Positions 8,627 to 63,376 of a stretch of DNA of 64,000 nucleotides are shown here, one piece after another. How positions within the stretch are numbered: the first letter of the stretch is position 1; every line of letters starts with the position of its first letter. Position numbers and translations under genes: made by a program. This stretch comes from Macrostomum lignano. Its lineage: Eukaryota. Under the pieces are notes generated by a model that made no database searches, was not told the origin of the DNA, and worked only from the letters and a program-made list of their open reading frames with translations. The stretch spans positions 399,693 through 463,692 of the forward strand of contig NIVC01000181.1 of the NCBI GenBank assembly GCA_002269645.1, given 5' to 3'.

Positions 8627-24856
<16,230 letters not shown>

Positions 24857-26490: not shown

Positions 26491-26685
26491 ATGAAGTGGC
26501 AACTCGCTCTCGGACTTTTGCTGTTCGCAGCCCTGGCCGTCGCCATGCCCAGCCAGGAGGAGAAGGCCATGGCCGAACGCGTGCTGGAGGAGACTCTGTC
26601 CAACCTGGACGAGTCCAGCGTGTCGGAGGAGCAGATTCCGAAGCTGAAGAAGAAGATCTTCCGTGTTCATGTTAGGTTCGGTTAG
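26491..26685 (+). CDS. Secreted prepropeptide copy 1 (64 aa; tail KLKKK-IFRVHVRF-G)
   Basis: MKWQLALGLLLFAALAVA signal-like N-terminus, acidic spacer, Lys cluster and terminal Gly before the stop; intronless; one of 12 paralogs. Confidence 0.9.
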   Translation: MKWQLALGLLLFAALAVAMPSQEEKAMAERVLEETLSNLDESSVSEEQIPKLKKKIFRVHVRFG

Positions 26686-28249
26686 ATAAGCTCACAGATA
26701 CGCCTGAGATTGAAGACGCTTCATCGAAGATGATCTGGCCCTGACAACTGACCTGACTCTGAACTTTTACTCGTTTGCGAATAATCCTTAAGCGTTGACA
26801 GTAAAGTCAGTGATTACAGTTGAACTAAATATACAAACGAAACACCGACAATACTCAGTTTAAGCACCCCATGTAACTAAAAGCTCTTCCTTCTTAATTA
26901 TAGTTTTTTTATTTCTCAAAGTCGCAATTCGATTTGGCCATAGTAGAGGAGTCATTAATTTATCATATTGCTTTTCTTTCCTTTAAAGGTCTAAGGTTTT
27001 GACTCCTTATTTTGACTTCTTATCCCTGAGATAGGAAAATGAAACACAAAGCCAAATGAAGCAGTCGTTTTTATACGAGATCACCTACTTAAGAATAGTA
27101 AGATAAGATTATGAACCGAATCATTTTATAGTGTGTGACTGCGCACCGATAGTTTAATAGAACTTCAAACTTCAACGTGTGTGTTCACCAGTAAGGTTTT
27201 GGATTTGTGGTTTAGCTGTCTAAAAGTAAGGACTCAGAAGCTGGTCCTGACCTATCACGAAATTGAATCTTACTTTTACTCGTAAACACCCACATGGAGG
27301 CTCAATCTTGTACCTACTTTGTAGCAATCTACAGCCAGTTTACTGAATTTCACATATAAGTCCGTAATTTAATCGTCTTTGCTGTTTCCCTCAACGCATT
27401 GATAAGTTATTTAAGCGGAAATTTACAATGAGAAGGACTGTAATCTAACCTATTCATGTCGCAGATCTTTTCTAAGATTTTTTGAGATCAATATGCCTTT
27501 TTCTAATTTCAATTTTTTCAGAGAATGTGTCGTCGAAGATACCGCTAGGCATGTGTCTTTAGGTATGGTTCATTGGAAGTATGGTTGATGAAACTGTCCA
27601 TGAGAATGTGTATAATATGAGTTTCATTTGTCTCCCTACTAATATCTTATTCGCTCGATCCCTACCTCGATGAACATATCGAGGACAGGCGAAATCTGTC
27701 TTTAGCTGAAGTTGGTTTTTGTCGTTATCCTGAATTTTTTTCAATTTTAAATCTGTTATGCGACCAAAGCAGTCGTCCATCTATTATTTAATGATATGCA
27801 ACTAGTCACTGAAAAGTCAAGTAATATTAATTAAATTAGTACAATAATTAAACTCTACCCTCAGTCGTTAAAATTCGCTTAGGGAACACACTGTAGGACT
27901 GCCGGTATTTGCTAGCTCATTTGGTGCGTGAACCTCGTCTGGGGGCACATCGCGTCACTTGAATTTTACTTGACGCGATTTCCCAGTATTGTACTTGAAC
28001 AAGTGGGAGAAAATTCCATACTCGAATCCCCCATCGTCACAGAATGGAGCTGCCAAAGCACACAGAGGCCTGAAATAATTGCACGCGATAACTACTTGAA
28101 ATATCTTCACTCGGGTATCTGCATTAGACTTTGAAACGGACATCGCTGTCTATTGGATACCGAACTTTTGAGAACTTCTTGCCAGTCTTAGTCAATAGCC
28201 TTCCAGTGCACCAATGTTATTTGGTTGAACTTGTACTGACACAGCATTA

Positions 28250-28425
28250 GAGCAGTACTTGACTTGTTTGATTGTCAAGATGTCATCAAACAAAAAGTAC
28301 TGCATGATACTCGCAGACAGCAAGCCAGTCACTGCTCCGCTCTTCTCACGTGAAAGCCTTCAACTCAAACAGCGCCGCTCCTCGGACCGGAAAACGTGCC
28401 AATCTGATACGCATAAATTCGCAGC
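28250..28425 (+). pseudogene. Promoter-only remnant of the peptide gene family (no CDS follows)
   Basis: ctcacgtgaaagcc..ggaccggaaaacgtgccaatctgatacgcataaattcg matches the family core promoter, but the downstream sequence is unrelated. Confidence 0.7.
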
Positions 28426-29709
28426 CAGTGTTTTCATCAAAATCGTGGTGTCTGCAGTCACAGATAGTAAATTTTAGTGTTGAAGATGTCGAAATTATAT
28501 TTGAACTGCTCGTGAACATGATTGCAACAATATCTTTTCATTAGACACTTTTTAGAGAGACAATTAAAAAACTATCCAATAAAATCGCGGCCCATGATCC
28601 AGCCGGCGTCCATGTCATCAAGAAGATATCGCGGCAAAATATTTTTGCTGAAAAACATCAATCACGCGCTCGTAGCTGCTGACCGCTTAAGACAACTTCA
28701 GAATCAGAATCGACCAGAGAGCGACCAAAATGAATCAGACAACTGGTTGGATTATTGCGAGCTAGTCTTCGCGGAAAAGCCAAGCTTGAACCGAGCCCAT
28801 TCGAGGCCTGATAGAAATACAAATGCTCGCACTCTGTTCCGAGAAGGTACTGAGGTAGCAGCTCTGCAGATGTACTCACTCGAGATTTATCTGGCTTCTG
28901 CGCCATTCAATGTGTCCCTCAATTCTTGTTCTCAAGCCCTGGAATCATTGTACTGCACAAGTGCGGAAAAGGCTGAGCGGTAAGTACATGTATGATCTCT
29001 ACCAAATCAGCTAGAAAAAATTATATGGCACCCTCAGCAGCTTTGGCACCTTTTCCTTGAGGGTCATGTTAACGAGGTTTACAGTGGCCGAATCGTGGAC
29101 TAGGGAACAGATTGCCATTGCACTGCCTCAAGTTCCAGTACTAGCAGCAATGCATTAAACTGATGGGCACCTAGGCTCTCTCAGACAATGCTACACATCA
29201 CTTGAGGGAAGGCTGCTTTGGAGGTATTTTAATGTTCTGAAACAATCATAAATAGCTATTTGATGAGCCCTCCTAATCGTAAGTTCAACTGTGTTAATTC
29301 AGGAAAGCATTCCTCAAGCATGGGCTCGAATCGCCATTCTATCTATACACTTTCCTGAGCCGAGGAATTACTCGTACCTCTGCTGCAAGCGGCTGTCAAT
29401 TAACTTTACAGTGCAGCTGGCCAAGAGTAAAATAGAAAGCGGCAAGTCGAATACACTTGCATAGAAAGAGTTCCTGTGAGTTACCTGCTTGATTGACGGC
29501 TTTCATCAAACAAATATATTCTGCGAGATATGCGAGCTCTGCTCACGTGAAAGCCTATAACTCAAACATCATCGCAGCTGCCAGACCGGAAACACGTGCC
29601 AATCCGATGCGCATAAATACATACCTCTCAACTGCTCAAGAACTCAACTTCAAACTCGACTCAATCTACACACAGCTCGAAGACTCGACTCGACTCGACT
29701 CAAACAATC

Positions 29710-29928
29710 ATGAAGTGGCAACTCGCTCTCGGACTTTTGCTGTGCGCAGCCCTGGCCGTCGCCGAGCCCTCACGAGAGGAGAAGGCTGAGGCCATGGCCG
29801 CTCTGGAGGCTCTGTCCAACGTTGACGAGTCCAGCATGTCGGAGGAGGCCGTGGACACCGCCAAGAAGTGGCTCAGAGTTAGGGCCAGGGTTAGGGTCGG
29901 ATCCAGGAGGAGGTCTAGGTCCGGTTAG
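29710..29928 (+). CDS. Secreted prepropeptide copy 2 (72 aa, type II; tail KK-WLRVRARVRVGSRRRSRS-G)
   Basis: Same signal peptide and promoter core as the family, a divergent acidic spacer and an Arg-rich tail. Confidence 0.9.
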   Translation: MKWQLALGLLLCAALAVAEPSREEKAEAMAALEALSNVDESSMSEEAVDTAKKWLRVRARVRVGSRRRSRSG

Positions 29929-33090: not shown

Positions 33091-33285
33091 CTAACCGATG
33101 CGGACCCTAACCCTGAAGATCTTCTTCTTCAGGTCCATGGCCTTCTCCTCCGACACGTTGGGCTCGTCCAGGTTGGACAGAGTCTCCTCCAGCACACGTT
33201 CGGCCATGGCCTTCTCCTCCTGGCTGGGCACGGCGACGGCCAGGGCTGCGCACAGCAAAAGTCCGAGAGCGAGTTGCCACTTCAT
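33091..33285 (-). CDS. Secreted prepropeptide copy 3 (64 aa; tail DLKKK-IFRVRVRI-G)
   Basis: Intact paralog with the promoter cassette at about 33395-33500. Confidence 0.9.
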   Translation of the reverse strand: MKWQLALGLLLCAALAVAVPSQEEKAMAERVLEETLSNLDEPNVSEEKAMDLKKKIFRVRVRIG

Positions 33286-34062
33286 GATTGCTTGAGTCGA
33301 GTTGAGTCGAGTCTTCGAGCTGTGTGTAGATTGAGTCGAGTTTGAAGTTGAATTCTTGAGCAGTTGGGAGTTACGAATTTATGCACATCGGATTGGCACG
33401 TGTTTCCGGTCGGAGGAGCGACGCTGTTTGACCTGTCTTCTTTTAACGGAGCAGAGTCTGGGTGACTGAGCAGTAATTGCTCTTTTGATGACAGTGAGCA
33501 ATTAAACAATTAACGCGAGAATGAATTTCAAGTAGAAGTGTATTCGCCTAGTTTAAAGCTCATCAATTAAGTTTATTGACAGATTCTAATGGTTAAGGTT
33601 CGTTGGTATTTGTCCCCTTCATTTTTTCTCGGGGTATTTCCTAATATTTTTAAAGGCTACATAACCGAAATAGAAGAAATTTAAATTATCTAATTAACTA
33701 TATTATCTTAGTAAAGGCAGCGGAGCTGTGTGAAATTTAAGCGACACAGGCAAGTGACAGAAATCTAATTGCAGAGACAGATTTATTATATATTTTCAGG
33801 AATGGCATTTCCGTGTGCTAAATTAGACTTGGACTTCTAGCGTTCTCGTAAGTAGTCAGTGAATCGAAAAAAAGAATGCCCTTGTCATGAAATAGGAAAA
33901 CATTACAAATTCTGAGTCTAAACTCTTTATGAGGCTCATACTCATATACCTAAAACAAGGTGAACTAAAACGGTAAACGGCAGTAACAAGTGAAGGTGGC
34001 TAATCGATCATTATTGACTATCTACTTCAGTATTATCAATAGTTACATATATCTTGTCTAGC

Positions 34063-36996
34063 TGTTGTGTTCTAGTGACACAGAGAGTTTCGTTTGATTG
34101 TAGCTTTTTGAGCTCAGAGATACACATCTCGCTCACAATATATTTATAGAGATCAAACTCCTACTTGCACGTTGCACGTTGCACGTTGCAATCTCCTACT
34201 CATTCTAGTATGAGTACAGTATACACCCACGCATTCAATAAGGCCAATAGTTCATTGTCAGTAGTCAGTTCATTGCGCGAGCATTGTCAATCACAACATT
34301 CTTTCCCCTTCCGGAAGAGGATAACACGCCGGTTGCCGTCGAGCTCGAGTCGACCTTCGGAGCGCCGCCTCGGGTAGTGGCTCGCCAGGCGGTGGTGGCG
34401 GCACCGTCGCCGCCCTGGCCACCGGCTCAGGCAGCAGGAGCGCCTCGAACAGCTCGTCCGCTCGGTCTTTGCTTCGCCTTCGCTTGTTGGTGTAGTCGGC
34501 ATTCTTAGCTCGCCTCTGTGCGATGCTGTCGCGCAGGTCGTCGTCGCTCGGCAGTTGCTCTTGAGTCGGCCTGAGTAGTTTGCCTGAGGAGCCGCCGCGA
34601 CCTCGCGGAAGATGTCGATTTCGATCTTGTCCCATGGACCTGCTGGCCACTCGTCTGTTGAGGCTTGCCAGACTCCTCCCCCAGAGTGCAGGCCGTGCAG
34701 TTCTCGACGTAGTCCTCCACCTGCCGGTCAATTCCAGGAAACCAGACCGTGTCGCGGCACCGCTGCATAGACCGAAAGACACCCGGATGCCCTTCGTGGG
34801 CCTCCTCGATGACTTGAAGTCGCAGGCTCGTCGGGATGATCGCGCGTTCACCACGACCGAGGCACTGACCGTACTTCCAGCAGAACAGCTCGTCCCGGAC
34901 GTTGAAGTACGGCTTCAGAGAGCTGTCCACCTTCGTCGGCCAGCCACCCGAGATGTACCGCAGAACCGGCTGCAGCACTTCGTCCTCCTTGGTCGCCGTT
35001 GCCAGTGCGTCTGCCGTCAGCGTTGTCTTCGAGTTGACGACTGCGTAGACGTAACCTCCTCATCAGTCTCCTCGGCTGGAACACGCTCCTTCGTGGCCCA
35101 TCTGGACAGCATGTCCGCGCACACTTGTTGTCAGCGCCAGGGATGTGCTCAAACCGGACGTCGTAGCCGCGAAGTCTCGACCCATCGATGATGTGCCCCA
35201 TGCCTTTCGAGTCGAGCAGAGTTGTCAGGGCCTTGTGGTCGGTGCGCAGCGTTACTCGTCTGCCGTATAGATAGTAGTGCCAGCGTTCGATGCTTCATAC
35301 ACAGGCCAGGGCTTGTCGCTCTCCGGCTGAGTATCGCTTTTCCGCTGGGCTGAGTGCTCTCGATGCGAACGCGATTGGCACCTCTTTTCCGTTTTGTACT
35401 TGGCTGAGTACCACCCCAGTCCGTCTAGACTTGCATCGCAGGTGACGTACGTCTCAGCTTGGCAGTCAAAATGAACTAACACTGGGCTGCTGGTTACGGC
35501 TGACTTGAGTGTACGGAAGGCTGTACGTTCTCGCTCACCCCAGTGCCAGTCCGCGTCCTTTTTGAGCAGTTGTCTCAGAGGCTCGGCGATCGCTGAGTAA
35601 TGCGGTATGAACTTGTGCAAAAAGTTCACTGCGCCGAGGAACGATTAAATTTGCGCGACCGTTTTTGGCTCAGGAATTCTTAGAATTGCGTCGATGTTGG
35701 ACTTGGTCGGTTTGAGGCCGTCTGCAGAGATGACCAATCCGAAGAAATCCACGCTCGCCTGCCGGAATTTGCACTTCTCTCGATTGAGTGTAAAGCCTTC
35801 GCGGTGAATTCGCCCTAAGACTTCTCGGAGGTTCTTGTCGTGCTCAGTCTCGTGCTTGCCGTGCACCAGGATGTCGTCCACGATGTTGATGGCGCCTGGA
35901 GCTCCTCGAAGCACCGTCTGCAGGGCTCGCTGGAAGGCAGCTCCGGAGCTGGATAGCCCGAATGTCACCACAGTGAACTGGTACAGGCCGGCATCGGTGA
36001 TGAAGCACGTTAGTCCTCGAGAGTCTGGATGCAGTGGAATCTGCTGGTAGCCTTGACGTAGGTCCAGCTTGCTGAAGCACTTCGAGCCGTTGATGCTGGC
36101 CGATAGGTCCTCGATTGACGGTACCGGATAGCTGTCCGCGATCACCGCCCGTTGACCTGCCGCAGATCCACGCAGAGACGAACCTTGTTGGACTCCTTCT
36201 TGCGCGTCACGACTACGTTGCTGACCCACTCGGACGCGTCGACTTTCTCAATGATGCCCTGTTGCTCCATCCGGCTGATCTCTGACGTCACTTCGTCCTT
36301 CAGGCCGATCGGCAGCTTCCGCATTGGCTCAGACACTGGCTTGACCGAGGCGTCGATCTTTGTCCGGTTAATGAAGCTCTTGGACCGGCCCAGACCGTCG
36401 AAGATTCCGGAGAAGTCGCGCTCGATCGTAGTCTCGCTGATGCTCATCACTCTTTTCGCCTTGGAAGATTCTGAATCCGAGGGCCTAAAACAGGTCGCGG
36501 CCCAGGATCTTCGCTCTTTTGTCGGCGACATAGAATGTGGCTTCTGTCCAGATGTCGTTAAACGTCACTGGAAGCTCGACCTTGCCGATGGTTTTGATCG
36601 CAAATCCGCCGTATGCCTCCAGTCTTGTGCTCGTCGGGAGCAGCGGGTGCCTAGCGAAGGATTTCTTGAACGTCTCCGTGTTGAGCAATGAGACGGCAGC
36701 ACCGCAGTCGATTTGTAGTCGGATCATTTGTAGTCGCAGAATAAGTTGTCGATGCTCCTGTTGTTCACTGCCAAGACCGCAAGGCTAGACTTTGATTGTA
36801 GCTTTTTGAGCTCAGCGATACACATCTCGCTCACAATATATTTATAGAGATCAAACTCCTACTTGCACGTTGCGCGTTGCACGTTGCAATCACCTACTCA
36901 TTCTAGGATGAGTACAGTATACGCCCACGCATTCAATAAGGCCAATAGTTCATTGTCAGTAGTCAGTTCATTGCGCGAGCATTGTCAATCACAACA
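34063..36996 (-). mobile_element. Internally deleted Ty3/Gypsy LTR retrotransposon (K02A2.6/Mag-like pol)
   Basis: 3' LTR 34063-34298 (TGTTG..CAACA); 5' LTR 36791-36996, missing its U5 end; polypurine tract GGAAGGGGAAAGAA at 34299-34312; 5-bp TSD CTAGC (34058-62 and 36997-37001). Frameshifted pol: protease LQIDCGA, RT SKLDLRQGYQQI..IVDDILV, RNase H TCDAS..RTDHKAL, integrase zinc finger HEGHPG..CTAC. Gag, PBS and the integrase core are missing. Confidence 0.93.
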
Positions 36997-38103: not shown

Positions 38104-38298
38104 CTAACCAATCCTGACACGAAGACGGACGAACTTCTTCTTCAGCTTCGGAAACTGCTCCTCCGACACGCTGGACTCGTCCAGGTTGGACAGAGTCTCC
38201 TCCAGCACACGTTCGGCCATGGCCTTCTCCTCCTGGCTGGGCACGGCGACGGCCAGGGCTGCGCACAGCAAAAGTCCGAGAGCGAGTTGCCACTTCAT
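38104..38298 (-). CDS. Secreted prepropeptide copy 4 (64 aa; tail KLKKK-FVRLRVRI-G)
   Basis: The true start is taken as the conserved MKWQ ATG at 38298, not the upstream ATG of the ORF track. Confidence 0.9.
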   Translation of the reverse strand: MKWQLALGLLLCAALAVAVPSQEEKAMAERVLEETLSNLDESSVSEEQFPKLKKKFVRLRVRIG

Positions 38299-39599
38299 GA
38301 TTGCTTGAGTCGAGTCTTCGAGCTGTATGTAGATTGAGTCGAGTTTGAAGTTGACTTCTTGAGCAGTTGGGAGTTCCGAATTTATGCGCATCGGATTGGC
38401 ACGTGTTTCTGGTCGGAGGAGCGACGCTGTTTGACCTGTGTTCTTTCACGTGAGAATAGCGGAACAGAGACTGTCTTGCTTTCCTACAAGAAATGATGCA
38501 GCTTTTGTTTGCTTGACGACAGCTGTCAGTCAAACAGATAACTCTTGAGAATTTTCTCTCTGAAACTGGTCTATAGACCATTCGGATTAAGCTATTTGAC
38601 TTTTAGTTGCATAGTAGAGTTTACCGTCAGTCTCTTACAGCTGACTTGTAATTGTTTGCGCAGAATAGATTGATGTTTGAAATGACCACTCGTACTTCAC
38701 TAGTGGAAATCAGCAGTGAAAATTTCTTTGCAATGTGTCATATAGCAGTCATCAAATAGGCATTGGTGATAGCCTCAGAGAAGTATTAAAATTTGCAAAT
38801 CCAAAATTAAGGATTGATTAATTTTGGCCAAGGTGCCCTGCATTACAATGCGTGTGCCTGACTGTTCAGGCACAGAGCTCAGAAGATAGGGTCAAGGAGC
38901 AACTCCACACTTGAATAATATACATGTTAGATCCAGTAGAATAAAACAGTCTTTAATAGACTGGTTTGAGTTGCTTTCCTGCCAAGGTTTTTTGCGTCTA
39001 AATGACAGCTCGTAAGACGTTGTCAATACGTATCGGAGATTGACCCACTGCATGCTACTTTTGTACCTAGTTGATGCGGGACTCAGGGTCTGATCGGCAG
39101 ATGGAAAGCAGATATCAGCAAGCAGCAGAGCCAACCTGCTCATTCTCTCCGGGACAGGGGCAAACACGTTTTCATGACCTTGCTATTATTATTGCAGATT
39201 TTCTTCCTTTACTCAGCCTCAGCGATGGCTGAATAATGCGGTTAAAACAGAGACAGAAGTCACATGACAAATGCACGCAACCTTCTAATTCATTCTGCGT
39301 TCTAAATTTCCTATCAATCCATCTTAAGCCTTTGTGATTTTCAATGAGATTCGACTGGTTTGTGCCGAGGCATTTGTGGATGATGCTGAGTACCGATCAG
39401 TCTGACCTCCTCCATGGTCAAGCTGATGGAGGTACCGTTGCTCTGGCGCCTTCTTTTCAGTGGATCTGAAAAATGACTCCACCGAAAGCACGCTGCACGT
39501 CCTGGTTGATAAACTACTAGCATCTCACCAGGTGGATCATGTACATGATCAGCCATCGCACGGCCATAACCAGCTTGCTGGGCCACAAGAGGACGGTCC

Positions 39600-40870
39600 C
39601 CGACTGCAAAGGTAAGCCCACAAGGTGGGATGATGTCTTTTCAAGTCTCTGGAATATAGTTATCGATGAGCTCTTTCGGAGGCCCGGCCTGACCCCTTTC
39701 TTAAAGTAGGTTACTCGGACGATGTCACCGCCGTGGCGTCTGAACCGTCCACTCAGGGACTTTCTTCAGATTTTTTTATCTACACCGCTGAGCAATGGGC
39801 GGATCGCTGTTGTCTAAAGCTTTCCGAGACTACGACGGCAGCGATCATTTTCACCAGCAGGACAAAGTGGCAGATTCGACCGCTCACGCTTTACGGAAGG
39901 GAAATCTTCTTCTAAATGTCCAGGGATTACCTTGGACCACAGGCTGAACTGGTCACCCCACGTTCAGACAAAAGCCAAGAGCGCCCTCGCAGTCCTTGCG
40001 CAGCTGCACAGGGCCGTCGGCACCACCTGGGGGCTCACTCCAAAACGTCTCTGGTGGATCTGCACTGCAATGGTTAGGTTGCTATCTCGTATGGCGGCCT
40101 GATCTGGGCTAGCGCCCTGCTGATGAAGATCTGCCTTGAGACTCTCAGGAGTACGCGTCTACTCCTTATGATTGCCTCAACGCTTTCCTTAACATTCCCC
40201 TACTGAACATCTTTGTTGGCAGGGAAGCCGCCAAGACTGTCCGCCGTTTGATTAGCGCTGGCATTTGTTTCCTGTCCCATCGAGCCATGGCTAAGCGCAA
40301 GCTCCTGCCTCACGCCGACCTCTACCTCAAAGACTTGAGAGACGGTGGCGGGCTCCACGTTTGATCTGCTGGTGAACCTCGAACTCTAAAACAGTTTCAG
40401 CGCTACAAAGTCACCATCACCTCTGTCCGCCACTGTCCGCTGGAATTTCCAGGAGGTCCTTTGTTACACGGACGACTTTCATCAAAGACGGCTACGGCGG
40501 CTTTGGGGTCTGCATCAGCATCAACGGCCGCGTCATTGCCACGCATGTCCAGCACACTGGCAGGTTCACTTTGACAGCCAAGCAGCCTTACAGGCCCTTT
40601 ACCACACCACAATGAAATACCAGACAGTCGCTGACTGCAACCGGCAGCTCAACCTTCTGGCCAGCAGCACTACTGTCAGGCTGAAGTGGATCCAAGGGCA
40701 CGCAAGCGTTTCCAGAAAAAGAGTTGACAGGCACCCTCGCCAAGACGGCGAGAAGCGGACCACCTGACCGGCCCCACGCCTCTGCCTGTCTGTGGCCTTC
40801 GGGGGCTAGCGGAATGGGCGACCCTCCCTCCCCGCTGTGCCTACGGACCATCCTGCAGTCAAGTAAAGTC
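39600..40870 (+). mobile_element. Degenerate non-LTR retrotransposon (LINE, RT plus RNase H; R1/LOA/I-like)
   Basis: Frameshifted motifs PQGG..LWNIVIDEL, KVGYSDDV, LNWSPHVQTK..RAVGTTWGLTPK and the RNase H-like VRLKWIQGH. Confidence 0.8.
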
Positions 40871-45854: not shown

Positions 45855-46935
<1,081 letters not shown>

Positions 46936-48604: not shown

Positions 48605-49229
48605 GATTGTTTGAGTCGAGTCTTCGAGCTGTGTGTAGATTGAGTCGAGTTTGAAGTTGAATTCTTGAGCAGTTGGAAGTTGCTCATTTATGCGCATCGG
48701 ATTGGCACGTGTTTCCGGTCGGAGGAGCGACGCTGTTTAACTTTTCTGCTTTCATGTAAACAGAACAGAGCAGTGAAATGCTTGTTTTCCTACAAGAAAT
48801 GATGCGGCTTTCGTTTGCTTGACGACAGCTGTCAGTCAAACAGGTAAGACTCGAGAGTTTCTCAGTCCAGGTGTATGCAATTCATTGCGGCCGATTTGTC
48901 TCTTGGTCGCTGTTCACAGTTTAAACAGTTCCTAGAGGCAGAGGTAATAATCCCTAAGCCAGATTTAGGACAGGATTCAGCGAGTAGCTGTATTGCTGCT
49001 CTTCTGTGCGGTTCAGGCATTTTACTCCAGAATGACACACCGATCGATGTCATGCGTCATAAGGAATTCTTCAAGCTTTATAAAGCCCAGTCTGATGATT
49101 AACTCTTGTTTCAGAATTAACCATAAATCTATCTGGACTGATGAAGTAAATAATATCCAAAGTCTCACAGATTTTTTAGCTCTGCTAGGATTGTCAGACA
49201 TTAAAAAATGAGATACTGTCCTATGATTC

Positions 49230-50157: not shown

Positions 50158-51900
50158 AGTCTCTTGCAGCTGACTTGTAATTGTTTGCGCAGAATAGATA
50201 GATGTTTAAAATGACCACTCGTACTTCACTAGTGGAATGTGTCATATAGCAGTCATCAAATAGGCATTGGTGATAGCCTCAGAGAAGGATTAAAATTTGC
50301 AAATTCAAACTTATGGATTTATTAATTTTGGCCAAGGTGCCCTGCATTACAATGCGTGTGCCTGACTGTTCAGGCACAGAGCTCAGAAGATAGGGTCAAG
50401 GAGCAACTCCACACTTGAATAATATACATATAAGATCCAGTAGAATAAAACAGTCTTTAATAGACTTGTTTGAGTTGCTTTCCTGCCAAGGTTTTTTTGC
50501 GTCTAAATGAAGCTGTAGACTGTCATACGATCGGAGATTGACCCACTTGCTACTTGACCAGGATGCGGGACAGGGGAGGCGATGGGCGATTCAGCAAGCA
50601 CAGAGCCGCCTGCTCATTCTCTCGGGACGAGGCAACACTTTTCATGGCCTTGCTTTGGATCCCTTCAGCCTCAGTAGTGCTGCTGGCCAGAAGGGTTGAG
50701 CTGCCTGCAGTCAGCGACTGTCTGGTATTTCATTGTGGTGTGGTAAAGGGCCTGTAAGGCTGCTTGGCTGTCAAAGTGAACCTACCAGTGTGCTGGACAT
50801 GCGTGGCAATGACGCGGCCGTTGATGATGATGCAGACCCCAAAGCCGCCGTAGCCGTCTTTGATGGAATTCGTCCGTGTAACAAAGGACCTCCTGGAAAT
50901 TCCAGCGGACAGTGGCGGACAGAGGTGATGGTGACTTTGTAGCGCTGAAACTGTTTTAGAGTTCGAGGTTCACCAGCAGATCAAACGTGGAGCCCGCCAC
51001 CGTCTCTCAAGTCTTTGAGGTAGAGGTCGGCGTGAGGCAGGAGCTTGCGCTTAGCCATGGCTCGATGGGACAGGAAACAAATGCCAGCGCTAATCAAACG
51101 GCGGGCAGTCTTGGCGGCTTCCCTGCCAACAAAGATGTTCAGTAGGGGAATGTTAAGGAAAGCGTTGAGGCAATCATAAGGAGTAGACGCGTACTCCTGA
51201 GAGTCTCAAGGCAGATCTTCATCAGCAGGGCGCTAGCCCAGATCAGGCCGCCGTACGAGATAGCAGGCCTAACCATTGCAGTGCAGATCCACCAGAGACG
51301 TTTTGGAGTGAGCCCCCAGGTGGTGCCGACGGCCCTGTGCAGCCGCGCGAGGACTGCGAGGGCGCTCTTGGATTTGTCTGAACGTGGGCCCAGTCTCTTG
51401 CAGCTGACTTGTAATTGTTTGCGCAGAATAGATAGATGTTTAAAATGACCACTCGTACTTCACTAGTGGAATGTGTCATATAGCAGTCATCAAATAGGCA
51501 TTGGTGATAGCCTCAGAGAAGGATTAAAATTTGCAAATTCAAACTTATGGATTTATTAATTTTGGCCAAGGTGCCCTGCATTACAATGCGTGTGCCTGAC
51601 TGTTCAGGCACAGAGCTCAGAAGATAGGGTCAAGGAGCAACTCCACACTTGAATAATATACATATAAGATCCAGTAGAATAAAACAGTCTTTAATAGACT
51701 TGTTTGTTTTCCTGAAGCTTTTTTTTCTAATGACAGCTCGTAAGACGTTGTCAATACGTATCGGAGATTGACCCACTGCATGCTACTTTTGTACCTAGTT
51801 GATGCGGGACTCAGGGTCTGATCGGCAGATGGAAAGCAGATATCAGCAAGCAGCAGAGCCAACCTGCTCATTCTCTCCGGGACAGAGGCAAACACGTTTT
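49430..51900. repeat. About 1.23-kb tandem duplication in the right arm (second LINE relic copy at about 50620-51390)
   Basis: Identical ORF pairs are offset by 1232-1234 nt (49501/50733; 50009/51243). Confidence 0.85.
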
Positions 51901-52668
51901 CATGACCTTGCTATTATTTTTGCAGATTTTCTTCCTTTTCTCAGCCTCAGCGATGGCTGAATAATGCGGTTAAAACAGAGACAGAAGTCACATGACAAAT
52001 GCACGCAACCTTCTAATTCATTCTGCGTTCTAAATTTCCTATCAATCCATCTTGAGCCTTTGTAATTTTCAATGAGATTCGACTGGTTTGTGCTGAGGCA
52101 TTTGTGGATGATGCTGAGTACCGATCAGTCTGACCTCCTCCATGGTCAAGCTGATGGAGGTACCGTTGCTTTGGCGCCTTCTTTTCAGTGGATCTGAAAA
52201 ATGACTCCACCAAAAGCACGCTGCACGTCCTGGTTGATAAACTACTAGCATCTCACCAGGTGGATCATGTACATGATCAGCCATCGCACGGCCATAACCA
52301 GCTTGCTGGCAACAATTACAAGTCAGCTGCAAGAGACTGACGGTAAACTCTACTATGCAACTAAAAGTCAAATAGCTTAATCTGAATGGTCTATAGACCA
52401 GTTTCAGAGAGAAAATTCTCAAGAGTTATCTGTTTGACTGACAGCTGTCGTCAAGCAAACAAAAGCTGCATCATTTCTTGTAGGAAAGCAAGACAGTCTC
52501 TGTTCCGCTATTCTCACGTGAAAGAAGACAGGTCAAACAGCGTCGCTCCTCCGACCGGAAACACGTGCCAATCCGATGCGCATAAATTCGGAACTCCCAA
52601 CTGCTCAAGAAGTCAACTTCAAACTCGACTCAATCTACATACAGCTCGAAGACTCGACTCAAGCAATC

Positions 52669-52863
52669 ATGAAGTGGCAACTCGCTCTCGGACTTTTGCT
52701 GTGCGCAGCCCTGGCCGTCGCCGTGCCCAGCCAGGAGGAGAAGGCCATGGCCGAACGTGTGCTGGAGGAGACTCTGTCCAACCTGGACGAGTCCAGCGTG
52801 TCGGAGGAGCAGTTTCCGAAGCTGAAGAAGAAGTTCGTCCGTCTTCGTGTCAGGATTGGTTAG
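52669..52863 (+). CDS. Secreted prepropeptide copy 8 (64 aa; protein identical to copy 4)
   Basis: Conserved ATG at 52669; mirror partner of 38104-38298. Confidence 0.9.
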   Translation: MKWQLALGLLLCAALAVAVPSQEEKAMAERVLEETLSNLDESSVSEEQFPKLKKKFVRLRVRIG

Positions 52864-54150: not shown

Positions 54151-55071
54151 CCAGTTGCTTAGGTAAATCTTCCTCTGCACATCTACGCTTTTCTGATAAG
54201 CCCCAATGTAGTTTAAAGTAACCACATGCTAATTTTTTTTGTTTTCATGATAACGACTTATTTTCCCTGCATTGGCTAGACATGATATATGTAACTATTG
54301 ATAGTACCGAAGTAGATAGTCAATAATTAGCCATTACCCACCTTCCACTTCTTCCTGCCTATTACCGCTTAAGTAAAGGGCCTTTACCTTGTTTTAGGTA
54401 TATGAGTAGGAGCCTCATAAAGAGTTTTGACTCATTTGGATTCAGAGTTTGTTATGTTTTCCTATTTCATCAGAAGAGCAGTCTTTTCATTTTCTGATTC
54501 ACTGACTATTTACATGAACGCTAGAAGTCTAAGTCTAATTTAGCAGGCAAAAGATATCAAAAGATGTCACAGATCCGTCTCTGCAAATCGATTTCTCCCG
54601 CTTGCCTCAGTCGCTTAAATTTCACACAGCTCCCCTGCCTTTAATAAAGATAATATGGTTAATTCGATAATTAAAATGTCTTCTATTTAGGGTATGTAGA
54701 ATAAAAAAAAATTAGGAAAAACCCTGAGAGAAATATGAATGGGACGAATACGAACGAACCTTAACCATTATAGTCTGTCAATAAACTTAACTGATGAGCT
54801 TTAAACTAGGCGAATACACTTCTACTTGAAATTCATTCTCGCGTTAATTGTTTAATTGCTCACTGTCATCAAAAGAGCAATTACTGCTCAGTCACCCAGA
54901 CTCTGCTCCGTTAAAAGAAGACAGATCAAACAGCGTCGCTCCTCCGACCGGAAACACGTGCCAATCCGATGTGCATAAATTGGGAACTGCCAACTGCTCA
55001 AGAATTCAACTTCAAACTCGACTCAATCTACACACAGCTCGAAGACTCGACTCGACTCGACTCAAGCAATC

Positions 55072-55266
55072 ATGAAGTGGCAACTCGCTCTTGGACTTTT
55101 GCTGTGCGCAGCCCTGGCCGTCGCCGTGCCCAGCCAGGAGGAGAAGGCCATGGCCGAACGTGTGCTGGAGGAGACTCTGTCCAACCTGGACGAGCCCAAC
55201 GTGTCGGAGGAGAAGGCCATGGACCTGAAGAAGAAGATCTTCAGGGTTAGGGTCCACATCGGTTAG
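55072..55266 (+). CDS. Secreted prepropeptide copy 9 (64 aa; tail DLKKK-IFRVRVHI-G)
   Basis: Mirror partner of copy 3; one R>H change in the tail. Confidence 0.9.
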   Translation: MKWQLALGLLLCAALAVAVPSQEEKAMAERVLEETLSNLDEPNVSEEKAMDLKKKIFRVRVHIG

Positions 55267-56719
55267 ATATGTCTGCCGCCACACTGAAGTTTAAGGCTAA
55301 CTGGCACTGACGACTCACAAGCTGACCGGACTCTGAACTCTGACTATGACAGCACAATCTTAAACACTATTGGTGAAATATACGAAGCTTGTTCGCTGAT
55401 CAGTTTTATCAAATAATAAGACAAACGCAATCAGTTAAATAATCACTGAGCACAAAACAGACTTTATCGATTTCTTCTTCTAATTCTAAATCTTGTTGTC
55501 TATCGACTGTGAAAGGAATGCATTTACAAAGATAATTATTATTTTTCATCGTCTATCGGTTTGATTAATGCCATATTTAATTTTTTATTAACTCCTTCCG
55601 ATTAACTCCTCATCAGCAACTTTTACCAGACGGTATTCATCGGTACTACGAGCGTAAGGGTTGGATTTCTGGTTTATCAGTTCTTTAAAAGTTGTTTCTT
55701 TCTGTATTTTATTCTGCCTTTTCCCGACATTATTCGAAAGTATAAAGCTAATCTTCTTTAAGTCAGCTCTTCTTAGTGAAAAATGCTCCAACCAGTCGTT
55801 GTAGGACTGTTTTTTCTGTTTTTTATTGTAGCTCAAAAACAAGTGCAATTCATTTCTATTTAAAATTGCTGCCTGTGACTAGCCACCTTCGCCCCTGTTC
55901 AGGAGGCAACAAAGAAACGAATAGAAATAGTCTAAATTCACTCAGGGACTGCTCATACACTGTTTGAGTAGTACCTTCATTCACTATTGTCAGTTACTCA
56001 CGAAAAATTGTTTAAAGTAAATAAGAATATGCCCGGAAATCAGCTATCTTGACTAAGATATAAGTATCCCTTTTGAGCTTCGAAATCAAAGTCATGGCTT
56101 ACGTTAACACTTACTCTCCCTTTGCTGCTTGGCCTACTAAAAACTCCCAGTTGACTCTAGGGCTCCTTCGAAACCCCTCTCCCATTAAACCTTGACACCT
56201 CCTCGATAATTGATCGAGTGAGATCACTACTGATTCTCTCGGGCCATTTTTTCTTACTATGCTTACAGAAACTCATTTCCAAACTCCCTACCACTGCCTC
56301 TACATCTCTGCGTCGCATTTCTTCCTCTCCGTCCCTCATCATCTCACTGTCTTTCTCTGTGAGTCTACGCTTATTTGATGAGCCCCCAATGAAGGATAAA
56401 GTAACCACACGATAAAGTTTGTTGTTTTCATGATCCTGACTTATTTTGCCTTCATCATTGGACATGAAATATCCGAGCTCGCATATGCATCATTTGACAA
56501 TACTAAGGTAGATTGTCAATAATTAGCCATTATCTACATTCCATTTGTCCCCACGATTTACCATTTACGTTCAAAGTAATTTTTTGGAAAGCTTAGAAAA
56601 TAGCTAATGATAGACGTAATATTTTTGCAATCATGTACATAGGCAGTTAAAACCCTAATTGTACACTTTGAACCCAAAAATTTACTATGTGTGACTGAAG
56701 GCACCACGATTTTGATGAA

Positions 56720-56885
56720 AACACTGGCTGCGAATTTATGCGTATCGGATTGGCACGTTTTCCGGTCCGAGGAGCGGCGCTGTTTGAGTTAAAGGCTTTC
56801 ACGTGAGAAGAGAGGAGCAGTGACTGGCATGCTGTCTGCGAGTCTGCAGTACTTTTTGTTTGATGACATGTTGACAATCAAACAA
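56720..56885 (-). pseudogene. Promoter-only remnant (mirror of 28250-28425)
   Basis: Reverse-complement match; no CDS follows. Confidence 0.7.
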
Positions 56886-57436: not shown

Positions 57437-57631
57437 CTAACCGAACCTAACATGAACACGGACGAACTTCTTCTTCAGCTTCGGAATCTGCTCCTCCGAC
57501 ACGTTGGGCTCGTCCAGGTTGGACAGAGTCTCCTCCAGCACACGTTCGGCCATGGCCTTCTCCTCCTGGCTGGGCATGGCGACGGCCAGGGCTGCGCACA
57601 GCAAAAGTCCGAGAGCGAGTTGCCACTTCAT
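57437..57631 (-). CDS. Secreted prepropeptide copy 10 (64 aa; tail KLKKK-FVRVHVRF-G)
   Basis: Mirror partner of copy 1 by 5' and 3' flanks. Confidence 0.9.
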   Translation of the reverse strand: MKWQLALGLLLCAALAVAMPSQEEKAMAERVLEETLSNLDEPNVSEEQIPKLKKKFVRVHVRFG

Positions 57632-59353
57632 GATTGCTTGAGTCGAGTCTTCGAGCTGTGTGTAGATTGAATCGAGTTTGAAGTTGAATTCTTGAGACGC
57701 TGGGAGTTACGAATTTATGCACATTGGATTGGCACATGTTTCCGTTCGAAGGAGCGACTCTACTTAACTTGTCTGCTTTCATGTAAAAAGAGTCAAGCAG
57801 TGACATGCTTGTTTTTCTACAAAAATGATGCAGCTTTTGTTTGCTTGACGACAGCTGTCAGTCAAACAGATAACTCTTGAGAGTTCTCTCAGAGCAAGTG
57901 TATTCAATTCAACGCGGTCGATTTGACTCTTAGCCGCTGGAGACTGTTTAAACTTTACTGTGTACTCGAAAGCGAAAGTTCAACAATGCGGGAACAATTT
58001 CTCATAGTAGGGTAACTAAATAACTCTGTTTTATTCCTTTTTGACTGCAAGAAATATTGCACATAGGCATTACTCTATTATCCCACGCGTAGATTTGAGT
58101 ATAGGGCCAAACGTTGTGTCATCTTGAAGAGAGCAAAATTTCCAACAACAGAGCGAAAAAAATATCTTTGCAAATGCAACAAATTCAGAGGTAGACTTTA
58201 AGAGCATTTAAAGTTCAGCTGCAATGCAAACAAGCTGGCCTTCAAATAATTTTGAGATAATTACGAACATTAAGCCCTGATACAATTCAACTTCTATTGG
58301 TCCTTGGGTAGATCTTCAATACGTATAGTTAATAGTTTATCATTTAGATGTACGAACTAAAGACATGTGCAGGAAAGCAACTGAAACAAGTGTCCATTAA
58401 AATAACTGCTACAAACACTGCCGGGTTGCTGAATTGTAGTGAAAATATTGGGTCAGGTGCGATGTATTAATTGTTTAAAAACATTGGTGATATTTTGAGT
58501 TGTAGAAGATGACAAGTTGTGACTTTAAAAAACTTATTTTGGGTGCATATTAGGACCGGAAGCTTCCTGACGACTACTAGTCGATAAGACGGTGAGTCGA
58601 TATGACTGAATTCTTAGAAACAGGGAAAATGATCGCAGAAATTGAACCAAATAAAGCACACAGCTAAATAGAGACTCTGTGTGCACATTGATCTTTGTGT
58701 AGCAGCTTATACGGGGGCTTGTGGACAACCTTCTTAAACTGGCTGGCTTGCACATAACAATCACATTTCAATCATTAAGAATCACTCCAGAAAGTGCAAA
58801 AAATTCCAAAATTTTGAGCTCGTACATTAACCGAAATGAATAAGAGCGTGAAGTCGCATCTTATAGAATTAATACAAAAGCTTGTAGAATAGTTGGTTGC
58901 GTATATAGTCAAAATATAGACATGTGTAATACCGTATTAGCTTTCGTTTCAGTGTGAGAGCCTCGACCGGCTTCCGAACTCTTCCCGAACCCACCATACT
59001 CCATGACATGGGCCAAATTGATCAACCGCCATAGGCTCTCGTAAACGTAACTTCGAAACTGACTAAATTCAAATAGACCAAACTGAAATACAAACATTTA
59101 CACTAAAAAACGCTCGAGTCGAGGGTTACCTGTTTGATAGACAGCTTTCATCAAACAAGCAAAGGCTGCAGCATATTCGCAGTCTGTGCTCCACCCCGCT
59201 CACGTGACATCAATTCCAACGACTTTTCTCCTAGGACCGGAAACACGTGCCAATCTGATGTGCATAAATTCGGAACTCCCGACTGCTCAACACAACAATC
59301 TCACATTCGACTCAACCTACACAGCTCGAAGACTCGACTCGACTCAAGCAATC

Positions 59354-59542
59354 ATGAAGTGGCAACTCGCTCTCGGACTTTTGCTGTTCGCAGCCATGGC
59401 CGTCGCCATGCCCACCCAGGAGGAGAAGGCCCACGCCGAACGTGTGCTGGAGGAGACTCTGTCCAACCTGGATGAATCCAGCCTGTCGCAGGAGCAGAGC
59501 CCGAAGCTGAAGAAGAAGTTCATCCATATTCATTTCGGTTAG
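59354..59542 (+). CDS. Secreted prepropeptide copy 11 (62 aa; tail KLKKK-FIHIHF-G)
   Basis: Conserved ATG at 59354. Confidence 0.9.
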   Translation: MKWQLALGLLLFAAMAVAMPTQEEKAHAERVLEETLSNLDESSLSQEQSPKLKKKFIHIHFG

Positions 59543-60694: not shown

Positions 60695-60925
60695 GAGACA
60701 GTTGTCATCAAAAAGCATATCCTCCATTGCTGCAAGGAAATCACGTAAAAATTTCTCAGTCTGTGTTCACCGTGAAAGACTTCTAACCAAAAAGCGTCGC
60801 TAGTCGGACCGGGAACAGCGGAACCTTCCGACTGCTCAGAAACTTAACAATACAGCTACACACAGAAGGCCGTCGACAACGCTAAGAAGTGGCTAAGGGT
60901 TAGGGCTAGGGTTAGGATCGGTTAA
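60695..60925 (+). pseudogene. Internally deleted type II peptide pseudogene (retains KAVDNAKKWLRVRARVRIG*)
   Basis: A degenerate promoter (gacagttgtcatcaaa, ggaccggg) and 5' UTR end (ctacacacag) are fused directly to the last 19 codons (60866-60925). The ATG, signal peptide and most of the spacer are deleted; the family 3' motif follows. Confidence 0.85.
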
Positions 60926-61179
60926 ATCTGTCTGTCGCACAACATCTGTGATCAAACTCGCTTCATCGAAAGGCCAAGGCTCGTGGTCACTAAGAGCTCA
61001 CAGACAGCTGACACTACTCTGAACTCTGACCCGTGACCGCTTTATTATTGACTGATCAGAATTAACAAAGCAAGGACAGTCTGTCCAAGCTATCAGCACC
61101 TTTAAACGGTTTTTTGAAGTTATTATTTACTCTGATTTACAAGTTATACGACATTGGATTGGTACTTGAGTTTATACAG

Positions 61180-61970: not shown

Positions 61971-61974
61971 TCGT

Positions 61975-62200
61975 TGGAACATTGTCATGAGCGAGCTGCT
62001 CGGCAGCCCCAATTCGGCCCCGGTACAGAAGGTCGGCTACGCGGACGATTTTATCGCCACTGTGGCTGGACCATCACCCGCGGTCCTAAGAGACCTACGA
62101 GTATTTGAGGCTTTCATTCACCGTGCCGAACGCTAAGCACACAGCTGCGGTCTCAAGCTCTCTGAGCCTAAAAGCGTGGCTATTACGCGTATGTACAGCC
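61975..62200 (+). mobile_element. LINE RT fragment
   Basis: WNIVMSELL..QKVGYADDFIATVAG..CGLKLSE, same family pattern as 39600-39900. Confidence 0.7.
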
Positions 62201-63187
62201 ACCGAAACTGGAGAACCGAACCGCTCTCCCTGGAAAGCAGAAGCGGTCGCAAAATTCGTTAAGAAGATCATCAACATGCGATCGAATCTTCCTTCGCAAG
62301 GTGCTACCGCTAGACTCTGGAGACCTAACCAGTGGGCATCAAAGGTAGCCAAACGAAACCTACCCAACAGAGGACCAGGACAAACAAGTCACTAATGATT
62401 TCAATTCCGTGTCAAGCATACACGACACAAAGTTGTTTCGGCAACGCGCAAGAGCAGGAGGGAGGGAGGGATCAGAATTTGTTGATTTATATCTTATTAA
62501 GTTATGGCAGGCTCAATTTAAACAGTAGACCCATCAAAAAGGTAGATCTGACGGTTCCTACCTGCAGCGCTATCAGGCTACTGCCAAGAATGCCCTTCAT
62601 GCCGTTTTTGGTGTTAGGCCGGATGCCAGATGGAACTCGGCTTGGCAGTTTTGCTTCGTGGCTATGTAGGCACCTAGTCATTAATTTCTGGGAAACTATC
62701 TTAGCATGACTTAGAATAAAAATGAATCAATTTGTCGGGAAACCCAAAGCCTAAATAGATAAATAAAATATCCATTCAGCGCTTATTCAAGTCAAAGACA
62801 AAACCCCACGTCGCCGCTTCACCGATTTCCCAGTTTCGTGCAGTTTACTACCTGAGAAAATATCTCAAGAAATAATGGACAACTGACTAAGAGTAACTGA
62901 ACGCAGCGAGTTTTCTACATTTGCACTGAGAAATACCTTAAGAGGTACTGGTTTGATTGACAGCTGCCATCCAACAAGCATATGTGTATGCTGCATAATA
63001 TTCTTAGACAACCAAGCGTGCATTCTTTACTCACGTAAAGCCAGAAAAATCAACAACTTTGCTCCTAGTACCGGAAACACGTGCCAATCTGATGTGCATA
63101 AATTCGGAACTGCCGACTGCTCAACACAACAATCTCACATTCGACTCAATCTACACAGCTCGAAGACTCGACTCGACTCAAGCAATC

Positions 63188-63376
63188 ATGAAGTGGCAAC
63201 TCGCTCTCGGACTTTTGCTGTTCGCAGCCATGGCCGTCGCCATGCCCACCCAGGAGGAGAAGGCCCACGCCGAACGTGTGCTGGAGGAGACTCTGTCCAA
63301 CCTGGACGAGTCCAGCCTGTCGCAGGAGCAGAGCCCGAAGCTGAAGAAGAAGTTCATCCATATTCATTTCGGTTAG
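63188..63376 (+). CDS. Secreted prepropeptide copy 12 (62 aa; protein identical to copy 11)
   Basis: Direct duplicate: about 59130-59850 matches about 62950-63670. Confidence 0.9.
   Translation: MKWQLALGLLLFAAMAVAMPTQEEKAHAERVLEETLSNLDESSLSQEQSPKLKKKFIHIHFG

Follow-up and report, generated by a model that had tools for sequence, protein, structure and literature searches.

What do the 12 short, closely similar genes crowded into one region of the Macrostomum lignano genome encode, and are they genes at all? The region lies within a stretch of 64,000 nucleotides (nt) on contig NIVC01000181.1 (positions 399,693 to 463,692 of the forward strand; assembly GCA_002269645.1), hereafter the window, in whose coordinates positions are given unless a contig is named. 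The original prediction described a recently amplified, diversifying family of intronless genes for secreted, amidated, ultrashort cationic peptides. Judged from sequence comparison, the 12 genes form the branch for ultrashort peptides within a prepropeptide superfamily that is restricted to Macrostomum, real, transcribed and unnamed, and their most likely function, predicted with moderate confidence, is that of secreted host-defence (antimicrobial-type) propeptides.

The gene cluster and its superfamily

A six-frame listing of open reading frames (ORFs), combined with a regular-expression scan, recovered the same 12 intact ORFs at the positions originally predicted, with lengths of 62, 64 or 72 amino acids (aa) and no intron in any coding sequence (CDS). 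Each line below gives coordinates and strand, followed by the protein length, the C-terminal tail, the upstream motif block and the motif in the 3' untranslated region (UTR).

Gene 1, 26491-26685, plus strand: 64 aa, tail IFRVHVRF-G; upstream motif block 26369-26390; 3'UTR motif 26755-26771
Gene 2, 29710-29928, plus strand: 72 aa, tail WLRVRARVRVGSRRRSRS-G; upstream motif block 29588-29609; 3'UTR motif 29992-30008
Gene 3, 33091-33285, minus strand: 64 aa, tail IFRVRVRI-G; upstream motif block 33386-33407; 3'UTR motif 33012-33028
Gene 4, 38104-38298, minus strand: 64 aa, tail FVRLRVRI-G; upstream motif block 38389-38410; 3'UTR motif 38032-38048
Gene 5, 41508-41726, plus strand: 72 aa, tail WLRVRARVRVGSRRRSRS-G, as in gene 2; upstream motif block 41396-41417; 3'UTR motif 41790-41806
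Gene 6, 44475-44663, minus strand: 62 aa, tail FIHIHF-G; upstream motif block 44757-44778; 3'UTR motif 44412-44428
Gene 7, 48410-48604, minus strand: 64 aa, tail IFRVRVHI-G; upstream motif block 48695-48716; 3'UTR motif 48331-48347
Gene 8, 52669-52863, plus strand: 64 aa, tail FVRLRVRI-G; upstream motif block 52557-52578; 3'UTR motif 52919-52935
Gene 9, 55072-55266, plus strand: 64 aa, tail IFRVRVHI-G; upstream motif block 54950-54971; 3'UTR motif 55329-55345
Gene 10, 57437-57631, minus strand: 64 aa, tail FVRVHVRF-G; upstream motif block 57722-57743; 3'UTR motif 57351-57367
Gene 11, 59354-59542, plus strand: 62 aa, tail FIHIHF-G; upstream motif block 59239-59260; 3'UTR motif 59625-59641
Gene 12, 63188-63376, plus strand: 62 aa, tail FIHIHF-G; upstream motif block 63073-63094; 3'UTR motif 63459-63475

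The proteins of genes 4 and 8 are identical. All 12 begin with MKWQ[L/I]ALGLLL[C/F]AA[L/M]AVA, by inspection a signal peptide: its n-region is M-K, its hydrophobic core spans 14 residues, and A-V-A supplies positions -3 and -1. It is followed by an acidic pro-region of 33-34 aa (net charge -5 to -8), a basic site (KKK, or KK in genes 2 and 5) and one of seven distinct tails of 6-18 aa in which hydrophobic residues alternate with Arg or His, and all 12 copies close with Gly and a stop codon as GGT TAG. The near-invariant N-terminus, acidic spacer, KK/KKK cluster, seven tails and Gly before the stop had all been anticipated; the accompanying claim that cysteines are absent holds for the pro-regions and tails but not for the signal peptides, 8 of the 12 having one Cys. 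A tblastn search of the window with five family members found no further complete copy and a single truncated one at 60854-60922.

Relatives of these genes are confined to Macrostomum. A profile of 15 members was searched against 1.84 billion representative proteins and a second profile against a 5.8-billion-sequence collection, a check that the original prediction had itself proposed, and both returned matches only in M. lignano and in one 929-nt genomic contig of Logan run SRR31628392. This contig, the sole match outside the Mlig_3_7 assembly (GCA_002269645.1), carries a family gene at 541-813 with a Pro/Arg-rich tail of 31 aa, and this distant paralogue retains the upstream motifs GACCGGAAA and GCATAAAT. 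The proteins matched are exclusively M. lignano entries named 'hypothetical protein BOX15_Mlig…', many of them 'partial'. Counted by distinct identifiers, the superfamily exceeds 50 BOX15 gene models on at least 15 contigs, in an assembly known to be redundant (PMC5730564), so that the amplified multigene family first proposed extends well beyond the 12 copies of the window. A Pfam-A hmmscan of three members at E-values up to 10 gave only sub-threshold chance matches (Lock_Gag1-like, TPR_TTI1_N, Apo-CIII), and a full-text literature search found no paper containing any of six peptide strings or six family gene identifiers, which bears out the absence of named relatives.

The superfamily members share the signal M[KR]W[QE][LFI][AV]LGLL…, the acidic pro-region and the basic site, and their tails are unrelated and cannot be aligned with one another. 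Some tails are W/R-rich, some Pro/Arg-rich and some Tyr/Arg/His-rich, with lengths from 6 to 38 aa. They include WRRRRRFRWRKAIRVAGKVAKAVL; WRIKSACKIFRRLLHLARKCYAKK-G, WFSRWFRITYRRRGGERRYLRSYFRL-G and GFHVHFH-G; WLLRRIRIRWRRVLRVASRVYRIYRYLPI-GK, FRIRIRWGRVARNVLRLL-GK and FHLHLP-GK; WRMRHRIHFRWRRVYGVVHRVYRGYRRIIC-GKR; the Pro/Arg-rich FLRVRLPRVRMPRVRLPRVRLPRLRVRFRWS-KK; and a Tyr/Arg/His-rich 38-mer ending in G that is found in the S5 file of PMC10414684. An end in G, GK or GKR, the signature of amidation, occurs in about 10 of 13 tail classes and in all 12 window genes. Elsewhere on the same contig, five more family genes lie within 20 kb (NIVC01000181.1:602599-622781), four with GFHVHFH-G and one with FHLHLP-GK, and thus the His-alternating sub-branch forms a cluster of its own.

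It could be argued that the ORFs are chance openings within a repeated or mobile DNA unit, as the units are repeated 12-15 times in a palindromic, transposon-rich region and overlapping ORFs are open in other frames. This explanation is effectively refuted by the pattern of constraint. The 12 units were aligned with their flanks, the conserved unit starting near -270 and ending some 200 nt beyond the stop. Indels within the CDS are all multiples of three (3, 3, 6 and 24 nt), while those in the flanks are of many lengths. Among distant paralogues, the ratio of nonsynonymous to synonymous differences (pN/pS) in the signal-peptide codons is 0.25-0.40 in the MKWQ frame versus 0.6-1.0 in the other five frames, and the nonsynonymous deficit is therefore confined to the proposed frame. 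Substitutions in the tails keep the residue class (hydrophobic IFVLWMA or basic RKH) in 18 of 18 minimum events, compared with 41% expected of random nonsynonymous changes (P ~1e-7). Arg positions of the shared tail pattern often use different codons (CGT, AGG, CGC), which indicates that the pattern rather than the nucleotide sequence is kept. The invariable Gly-stop and the RNA-seq-based gene models described below also speak against chance ORFs. Moreover, the unit contains no transposon protein domain or terminal repeat, and the ORFs for reverse transcriptase, RNase H and integrase at 34.5-36.2 kb are part of another, inserted element, so the genes are not the mobile-element fragments that the original prediction had named as its possible undoing.

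Two other readings of the same ORFs were rejected. Antisense ORFs overlap most copies and are broken in genes 2 and 5, and these breaks together with the frame-specific constraint rule them out as real genes. The possibility that GGT|TAG is a splice donor extending the ORF was likewise ruled out because the RNA-seq-based models end at the TAG stop. The only 'spliced' version of a family gene is an older ML2 model misnamed SERPIN: UniProt A0A1I8G6Q8, entered as a 'SERPIN domain-containing protein' of 73 aa, represents a gene 2-type copy that was spliced wrongly in the model. Another ML2 model, UniProt A0A1I8ID49, is a 1047-aa 'Neur_chan_LBD domain-containing protein' in which a complete prepropeptide is followed at some distance by its antisense translation.

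The gene models of GCA_002269645.1 come from a genome-guided RNA-seq assembly with StringTie and TACO, from which novel transcripts below 0.5 reads per kilobase per million mapped reads (RPKM) were discarded (PMC5730564), and they consequently reflect transcripts. Based on these homologous models, the cluster genes are transcribed; an exact-protein look-up of one window gene returned no record and hence linked no transcript contig or sample to it. The 'partial' proteins are products of the 5'UTR translated in frame and are colinear with the genome through the stop codon, so the 5'UTR-CDS span of those models contains no intron. Two earlier suppositions fall with these models: such genes were considered easy to miss in annotation, yet they are already present as RNA-seq-based 'hypothetical protein' models, mostly 5'-partial, and a complete lack of transcripts, named as an outcome that would have undone the prediction, no longer applies.

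The flanks of the genes are conserved as well, with motifs upstream and in the 3'UTR of all 12 copies, as had been noted originally. Gene 1 serves as the example:

26221-26490, plus strand: upstream block, with TGACAGCTGTCGTCAA at 26255-26270 and GGAAACACGTGCCAATCCGATG at 26369-26390
26755-26771, plus strand: 3'UTR motif GACTCTGAACTCTGACT

A conserved block of about 270 nt precedes every copy and is a putative promoter. Motifs conserved across copies are TGACAGCTGTC and the series GGAA core, CACGTG (an E-box) and CCAAT, in this order; all three elements of the series are present in the GGAAACACGTGCCAATCCGATG block. Downstream of this block, (G/A)CATAAAT lies about 95 nt before the ATG. Its reading as a TATA box was withdrawn, as the annotated models, which start between 45 and at least 153 nt before the ATG, reach or pass it. 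The 3'UTR motif occurs 70-90 nt after the stop, and a TTTACCAAATATAA-like element (putative poly(A) signal region) lies about 60-80 nt beyond it in 8 of the 12 copies.

Predicted function and its alternatives

The composition of the precursors suggests a role in defence. The negative charge of the pro-region tracks the positive charge of the basic site and tail (Spearman rho -0.83 over 22 sequences, and -0.84 with p = 6e-4 over 12 subfamily representatives). Pro-region charges span -4 to -16, and those of the basic site and tail taken together span +3 to +16. Other cationic defence peptides, defensins among them, also have pro-pieces that balance their charge. The hydrophobic moment calculated for a beta-strand (180 degrees per residue) is 1.0-1.45 for the short tails containing Arg and 0.6 for the His-only tails, and that for a helix (100 degrees) is 0.2-0.8 for the short tails; the short tails therefore read as beta-strand amphiphiles. 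These features support the precursor plan originally proposed, in which a signal peptide and an acidic pro-region lead to a basic site, a short cationic peptide and a Gly as amidation donor, and the distant paralogues strengthen it.

According to this layout, the signal peptide would be removed after AVA, and the acidic pro-region would neutralise the cationic tail during trafficking. An enzyme of the prohormone-convertase type may then cut after KK(K), and peptidylglycine alpha-amidating enzymes (PHM/PAL) would turn the terminal Gly into an amide at the C-terminus. The predicted products are IFRVRVRI-NH2, FVRLRVRI-NH2, IFRVHVRF-NH2, FIHIHF-NH2, WLRVRARVRVGSRRRSRS-NH2 and the like, which as beta-strand amphiphiles may bind and disrupt anionic microbial surfaces. 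The variants containing His would be charged only at acidic pH, for example in the gut of the worm.

The only property common to tails of 6-38 residues is that they are cationic and hydrophobic, which fits membrane-active peptides rather than receptor ligands. Precursors of frog-skin antimicrobial peptides (AMPs), too, keep the prepro part conserved while the mature part is hypervariable. In a published helminth-wide screen, three distant paralogue groups were positive by SignalP 4.1, judged AMP-like by 73-100% of 11 predictors and afterwards discarded (Irvine et al., 2023; PMC10414684), and the paralogues that passed SignalP have almost the same N-terminus as the window genes. Peptides of this size can be active: the synthetic beta-sheet-forming 8-mer IRIKIRIK (IK8L) is broadly bactericidal with low cytotoxicity (PMC4330034), and temporin-SHf, a natural amidated 8-mer, shows that AMPs can be so short (PMC10847208). 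In addition, the microbiota of M. lignano is shaped by its host, and the gut, where tails containing His would gain charge, is acidic (pH 5.2-6.8, compared to 7.4-9.0 for sea water; PMC10024726).

Several observations weigh against a defensive function. Tails of 6-8 residues with a net charge of +1 to +4 only just reach the minimum usual for AMPs or fall below it, and AlphaFold2, given a 15-sequence alignment, produced a low-confidence three-helix model (predicted local distance difference test score 65, predicted template modelling score 0.25) that gives beta structure no support and does not refute it. The charge correlation carries no phylogenetic correction, and pN/pS is 0.66-0.90 in signal, pro-region and tail, never above 1, with no signal of positive selection. 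One distant subfamily has the tail AVYKPNYYKD, which is not AMP-like, and two tails would end in -VRF-NH2, as in RFamides. Given the spread of the annotated 5' ends, the CATAAAT at -95 may not be a TATA box. Lys-Lys is a less common convertase site than Lys-Arg. Furthermore, the ProP-based pipeline gave other cut sites for the listed paralogues (PMC10414684). Searches of the literature and of supplements found no antimicrobial activity, processed peptide or expression site for any member. Family gene identifiers had no match in the supplement entries listed of PMC5946080 (ageing), PMC5816591 (germline/neoblast re-analysis), PMC12896417 (ploidy) or PMC7336406 (three-species RNA-seq), where the searches covered part of the family identifiers and some files use other transcript identifiers.

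Precursors of neuropeptides and peptide hormones likewise combine a signal peptide with a dibasic site and a Gly at the C-terminus, and the amidated tails might instead be ligands of receptors, FMRFamide-like or RFamide-like, released from neurons or neurosecretory cells. An -HVRF-NH2 end is predicted for two of the seven tails, and in Hydra, cationic peptides secreted by neurons combine neuropeptide-like with antimicrobial properties, which means that the two functions are not necessarily alternatives. Neuropeptides of Macrostomum with conserved amidated C-termini are also shown in a published alignment (PMC3503879). The C-terminal residues that would define such a family, however, are not conserved here, RF-G closing only two of the seven window tails and RI, HI, HF or RS the others, and RF, RI, HI, HF, RL, RS, FH and LP amides all being present in the superfamily. 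Each precursor holds a single peptide, the pro-region charge scales with that of the tail, there is no match to Pfam FARP or any other neuropeptide family, and more than 50 gene models with tails of 6-38 aa, including W/R-rich and Pro/Arg-rich ones, are unlike a set of ligands. We therefore regard receptor ligands as distinctly unlikely. Toxins or deterrents directed at eukaryotes (predators, competitors or prey) rather than microbes are very improbable. Toxin families likewise combine a conserved prepro region with hypervariable mature peptides and clustered duplication, and planarian toxin repertoires are under study (10.1101/2025.01.09.632098). The very short, Cys-free, Arg-rich tails are nevertheless closer to AMPs or cell-penetrating peptides than to neurotoxins. 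We know of no venom apparatus in M. lignano, and in culture the worm is fed diatoms. It grazes its food (PMC10024726).

Secretion from glands for another purpose is unlikely. The peptides could be reproductive or material products (of seminal-fluid, cement, shell or adhesive glands) or self-assembling cationic beta-sheet fibrils in mucus or secretions, with His-metal cross-linking as a possible mechanism. The strict hydrophobic/charged alternation in 6-10-mers is a textbook design for beta-sheet self-assembly, designed heptapeptides of the IHIHIQI type, which FIHIHF and GFHVHFH resemble, form Zn-binding amyloids (PMC8431744), and two studies describe the reproductive genes of M. lignano as numerous, lineage-specific and fast-evolving (PMC5977470, PMC7336406). 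On the other hand, the family gene identifiers searched, which were part of the total, had no match in the Macrostomum RNA-seq supplement entries listed, and the long W/R-rich paralogues are typical membrane-active sequences rather than assembly motifs. A bolder form of the idea, which we consider unlikely, is that the products are natural counterparts of designer self-assembling peptides: amidated (hydrophobic-Arg)n or (hydrophobic-His)n chains of 6-10 residues that would form extracellular cationic beta-sheet, amyloid-like assemblies, the His versions (FIHIHF-NH2, GFHVHFH-NH2, FHLHLP-NH2) being switched on by protonation or metal binding in the acidic gut. Instead of being soluble monomeric AMPs, they might then serve as a material with antimicrobial or even catalytic action. 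If true, they would rank with the shortest bioactive peptides that are gene-encoded and have a single-peptide precursor of their own.

Evolution and surroundings of the cluster

The arrangement of the copies records repeated duplication and loss. In addition to the 12 genes, the following features were identified:

26185-57953: large imperfect palindrome carrying genes 1-10, from self-BLAST
28270-28470, plus strand: relic upstream block with no CDS after it, GGACCGGAAAACGTGCCAATCTGATACGCATAAAT
56680-56880, minus strand: relic upstream block with no CDS after it, inverted duplicate of 28270-28470
60790-61060, plus strand: 5'-deleted pseudogene, an upstream-block remnant fused to ...EKAVDNAKKWLRVRARVRIG and a TAA stop, with the 3'UTR motif at 61015-61031

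Paired genes on the palindrome arms are 88% (genes 1 and 10), 90% (genes 3 and 9) and 98% (genes 4 and 8) identical, and the arm pair 39957-41645/50154-48464 is 97% identical. The centre, at about 42-48 kb, holds gene 6 and a (CTA)n array. This array (45855-46934, about 360 copies, 94% matches) adjoins gene 6 and is the source of a strong GC-skew dip at 46-48 kb. The 97% pairing of genes 5 and 7 ends 137 nt into the CDS, inside the pro-region; the two genes have the upstream region, the signal and half of the pro-region in common, and their tails are unrelated (WLRVRARV… versus IFRVRVHI), which identifies gene 5 as a recombinant. Genes 2 and 5 are 90% identical in direct orientation, and genes 6, 11 and 12 make up the FIHIHF group. 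The pseudogene has lost the signal peptide and most of the pro-region. Taken together, the palindrome duplicates, the recombinant, the pseudogene and the relic blocks look like birth-and-death evolution; the family evolves through inverted and tandem duplication at the locus, through loss of genes, and through recombination swapping the conserved 5' half between tails.

Synonymous and nonsynonymous divergence (Nei-Gojobori) is 0.045 and 0.030 in the signal, 0.177 and 0.159 in the pro-region, and 0.389 and 0.303 in the tail, which points to a 5' half that is homogenised or constrained and to tails that are old and pattern-constrained. A claim of positive or diversifying selection was dropped because no regional pN/pS exceeds 1. 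The word 'diversifying' in the original prediction thus remains apt as a description, since the tails differ, but not as a statement about selection; similarly, 'recently amplified' fits some pairs, given the 88-98% identity of the arms, but not the tail classes, which are older (synonymous divergence 0.39).

The rest of the window contains the following:

489-5323, plus strand: voltage-gated cation channel exons, the apparent upstream neighbour of the peptide cluster; three ORFs match Pfam Ion_trans (E 1e-16 to 1e-29)
34505-36229, minus strand: degraded pol region of a long terminal repeat retrotransposon between genes 3 and 4, split over several ORFs (RVT_1 35645-36229, RT_RNaseH_2 35252-35629, Integrase_H2C2 34505-34978); GC content rises to 0.56
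38628-41200 and 49235-52315: unclassified repeat of 1.2-1.7 kb between peptide genes, with a tandem pair at 49418-50654 and 50655-51912 (95% identity); its ORF at 49235-49501 has no Pfam match
7019-7465, 9791-10016, 10585-10984, 15705-16048, 16724-16909, 18611-18775 and 19890-20131: minisatellites, all within the initial 20 kb, whose repeat periods are 20, 4 (GATA), 20/80, 51, 28, 23 and 33 nt, respectively, giving rise to long spurious repeat-peptide ORFs

Comparison with known peptide systems

The kind of family is already known, namely a conserved anionic prepro region with a hypervariable cationic peptide; the ultrashort, beta-strand-type branch is unusual. The arminins of Hydra, attributed to Augustin in 2009 and Franzenburg in 2013, are reportedly a taxonomically restricted AMP family. 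Like the Macrostomum genes, they are said to encode a signal peptide, an anionic N-terminal pro-region and a cleaved and amidated cationic C-terminal peptide, and to form a lineage-restricted multigene family in which the cationic part varies. The active arminin peptides are about 30 aa long, compared to 6-18-mers with strict alternation in the Macrostomum cluster, and the profile searches of 1.84 billion representatives and 5.8 billion sequences gave no sign of homology to arminins.

The frog preprodermaseptin/temporin precursors (PF03032) offer a second likeness, with a conserved signal and acidic pro-piece, a basic site, a hypervariable mature peptide and Gly for amidation. They use a KR processing site, in contrast to the KK/KKK of the Macrostomum family, whose genes belong to a flatworm and have a CDS without an intron, and the Pfam model PF03032 did not match the window family (hmmscan, Pfam-A, E up to 10). 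Temporin-SHf (FFFLSRIF-NH2) shares the 8-residue length of many window tails but is helical and weakly cationic (PMC10847208), whereas the Macrostomum tails have beta-strand periodicity and 3-4 Arg. The cathelicidins are defined by a cathelin-like pro-domain with four Cys; the pro-region here is 33-34 aa, lacks Cys and has no Pfam match. General features of host-defence precursors are present, including the signal peptide (by inspection), the charge-balancing anionic pro-region and the conserved prepro region joined to a hypervariable mature region. By analogy, then, the family appears to work like the Hydra arminins and the frog preprodermaseptin/temporin precursors, and is a member of neither.

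The closest resemblance of the tails is to designed peptides. IK8L has the same 8-residue alternation of hydrophobic and cationic residues, and FVRVRVRL, IFRVRVRI and FVRLRVRI have nearly the same formula; IK8L is synthetic and built with Arg and Lys, whereas the Macrostomum tails are genome-encoded, use Arg or His, and have a predicted antimicrobial activity only. The catalytic amyloid heptapeptides IHIHIQI and IHIHIYI, whose pattern yields Zn2+-coordinating amyloid fibrils (PMC8431744), show the hydrophobic-His alternation of FIHIHF, GFHVHFH and FHLHLP, a resemblance of pattern only.

No paper searched describes the family as such; what comes closest is a supplementary list in Irvine et al. 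(2023). Among the AMP-like peptides (fAMP-LPs) of that screen, the S5 file holds the superfamily paralogues BOX15_Mlig024774g1/g2, Mlig008283g1/Mlig025063g1 and Mlig001477g4, but in separate groups (116, 142 and ungrouped 544) labelled 'Same genome' or 'Ungrouped', which does not reflect the shared prepro cassette (PMC10414684). No member of the window subfamily is among the S5 entries listed. That pipeline dropped peptides without sequelogs, single-genome groups and peptides shorter than 10 aa (PMC10414684), and the last cut-off would exclude the short tails of the window cluster. Such a family thus falls into a blind spot of screening, as 5'-partial models, tails below 10 aa and the removal of single-genome groups would jointly hide it.

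The ultrashort Arg/His tails lie near the designs of chemists (IRIKIRIK, IHIHIQI), are cheap to synthesise and may serve as minimal antimicrobial or self-assembling scaffolds. If the defensive function is true, the superfamily would be another convergent case of a conserved anionic prepro cassette with an interchangeable cationic tail. RNA interference is possible in M. lignano, and this flatworm model also offers stable transgenesis (PMC5730564) and a system for gnotobiotic microbiome work (PMC10024726). The helminth-wide screen of 2023 reported that the traditional lophotrochozoan AMP groups it sought (Big Defensin, CS-alpha-beta peptides and Myticalin) are missing from flatworms (PMC10414684), and our literature searches found no host-defence peptide described for M. 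lignano. The superfamily would then be the first candidate effector repertoire of this model, with which to study how a simple bilaterian shapes its microbiota.

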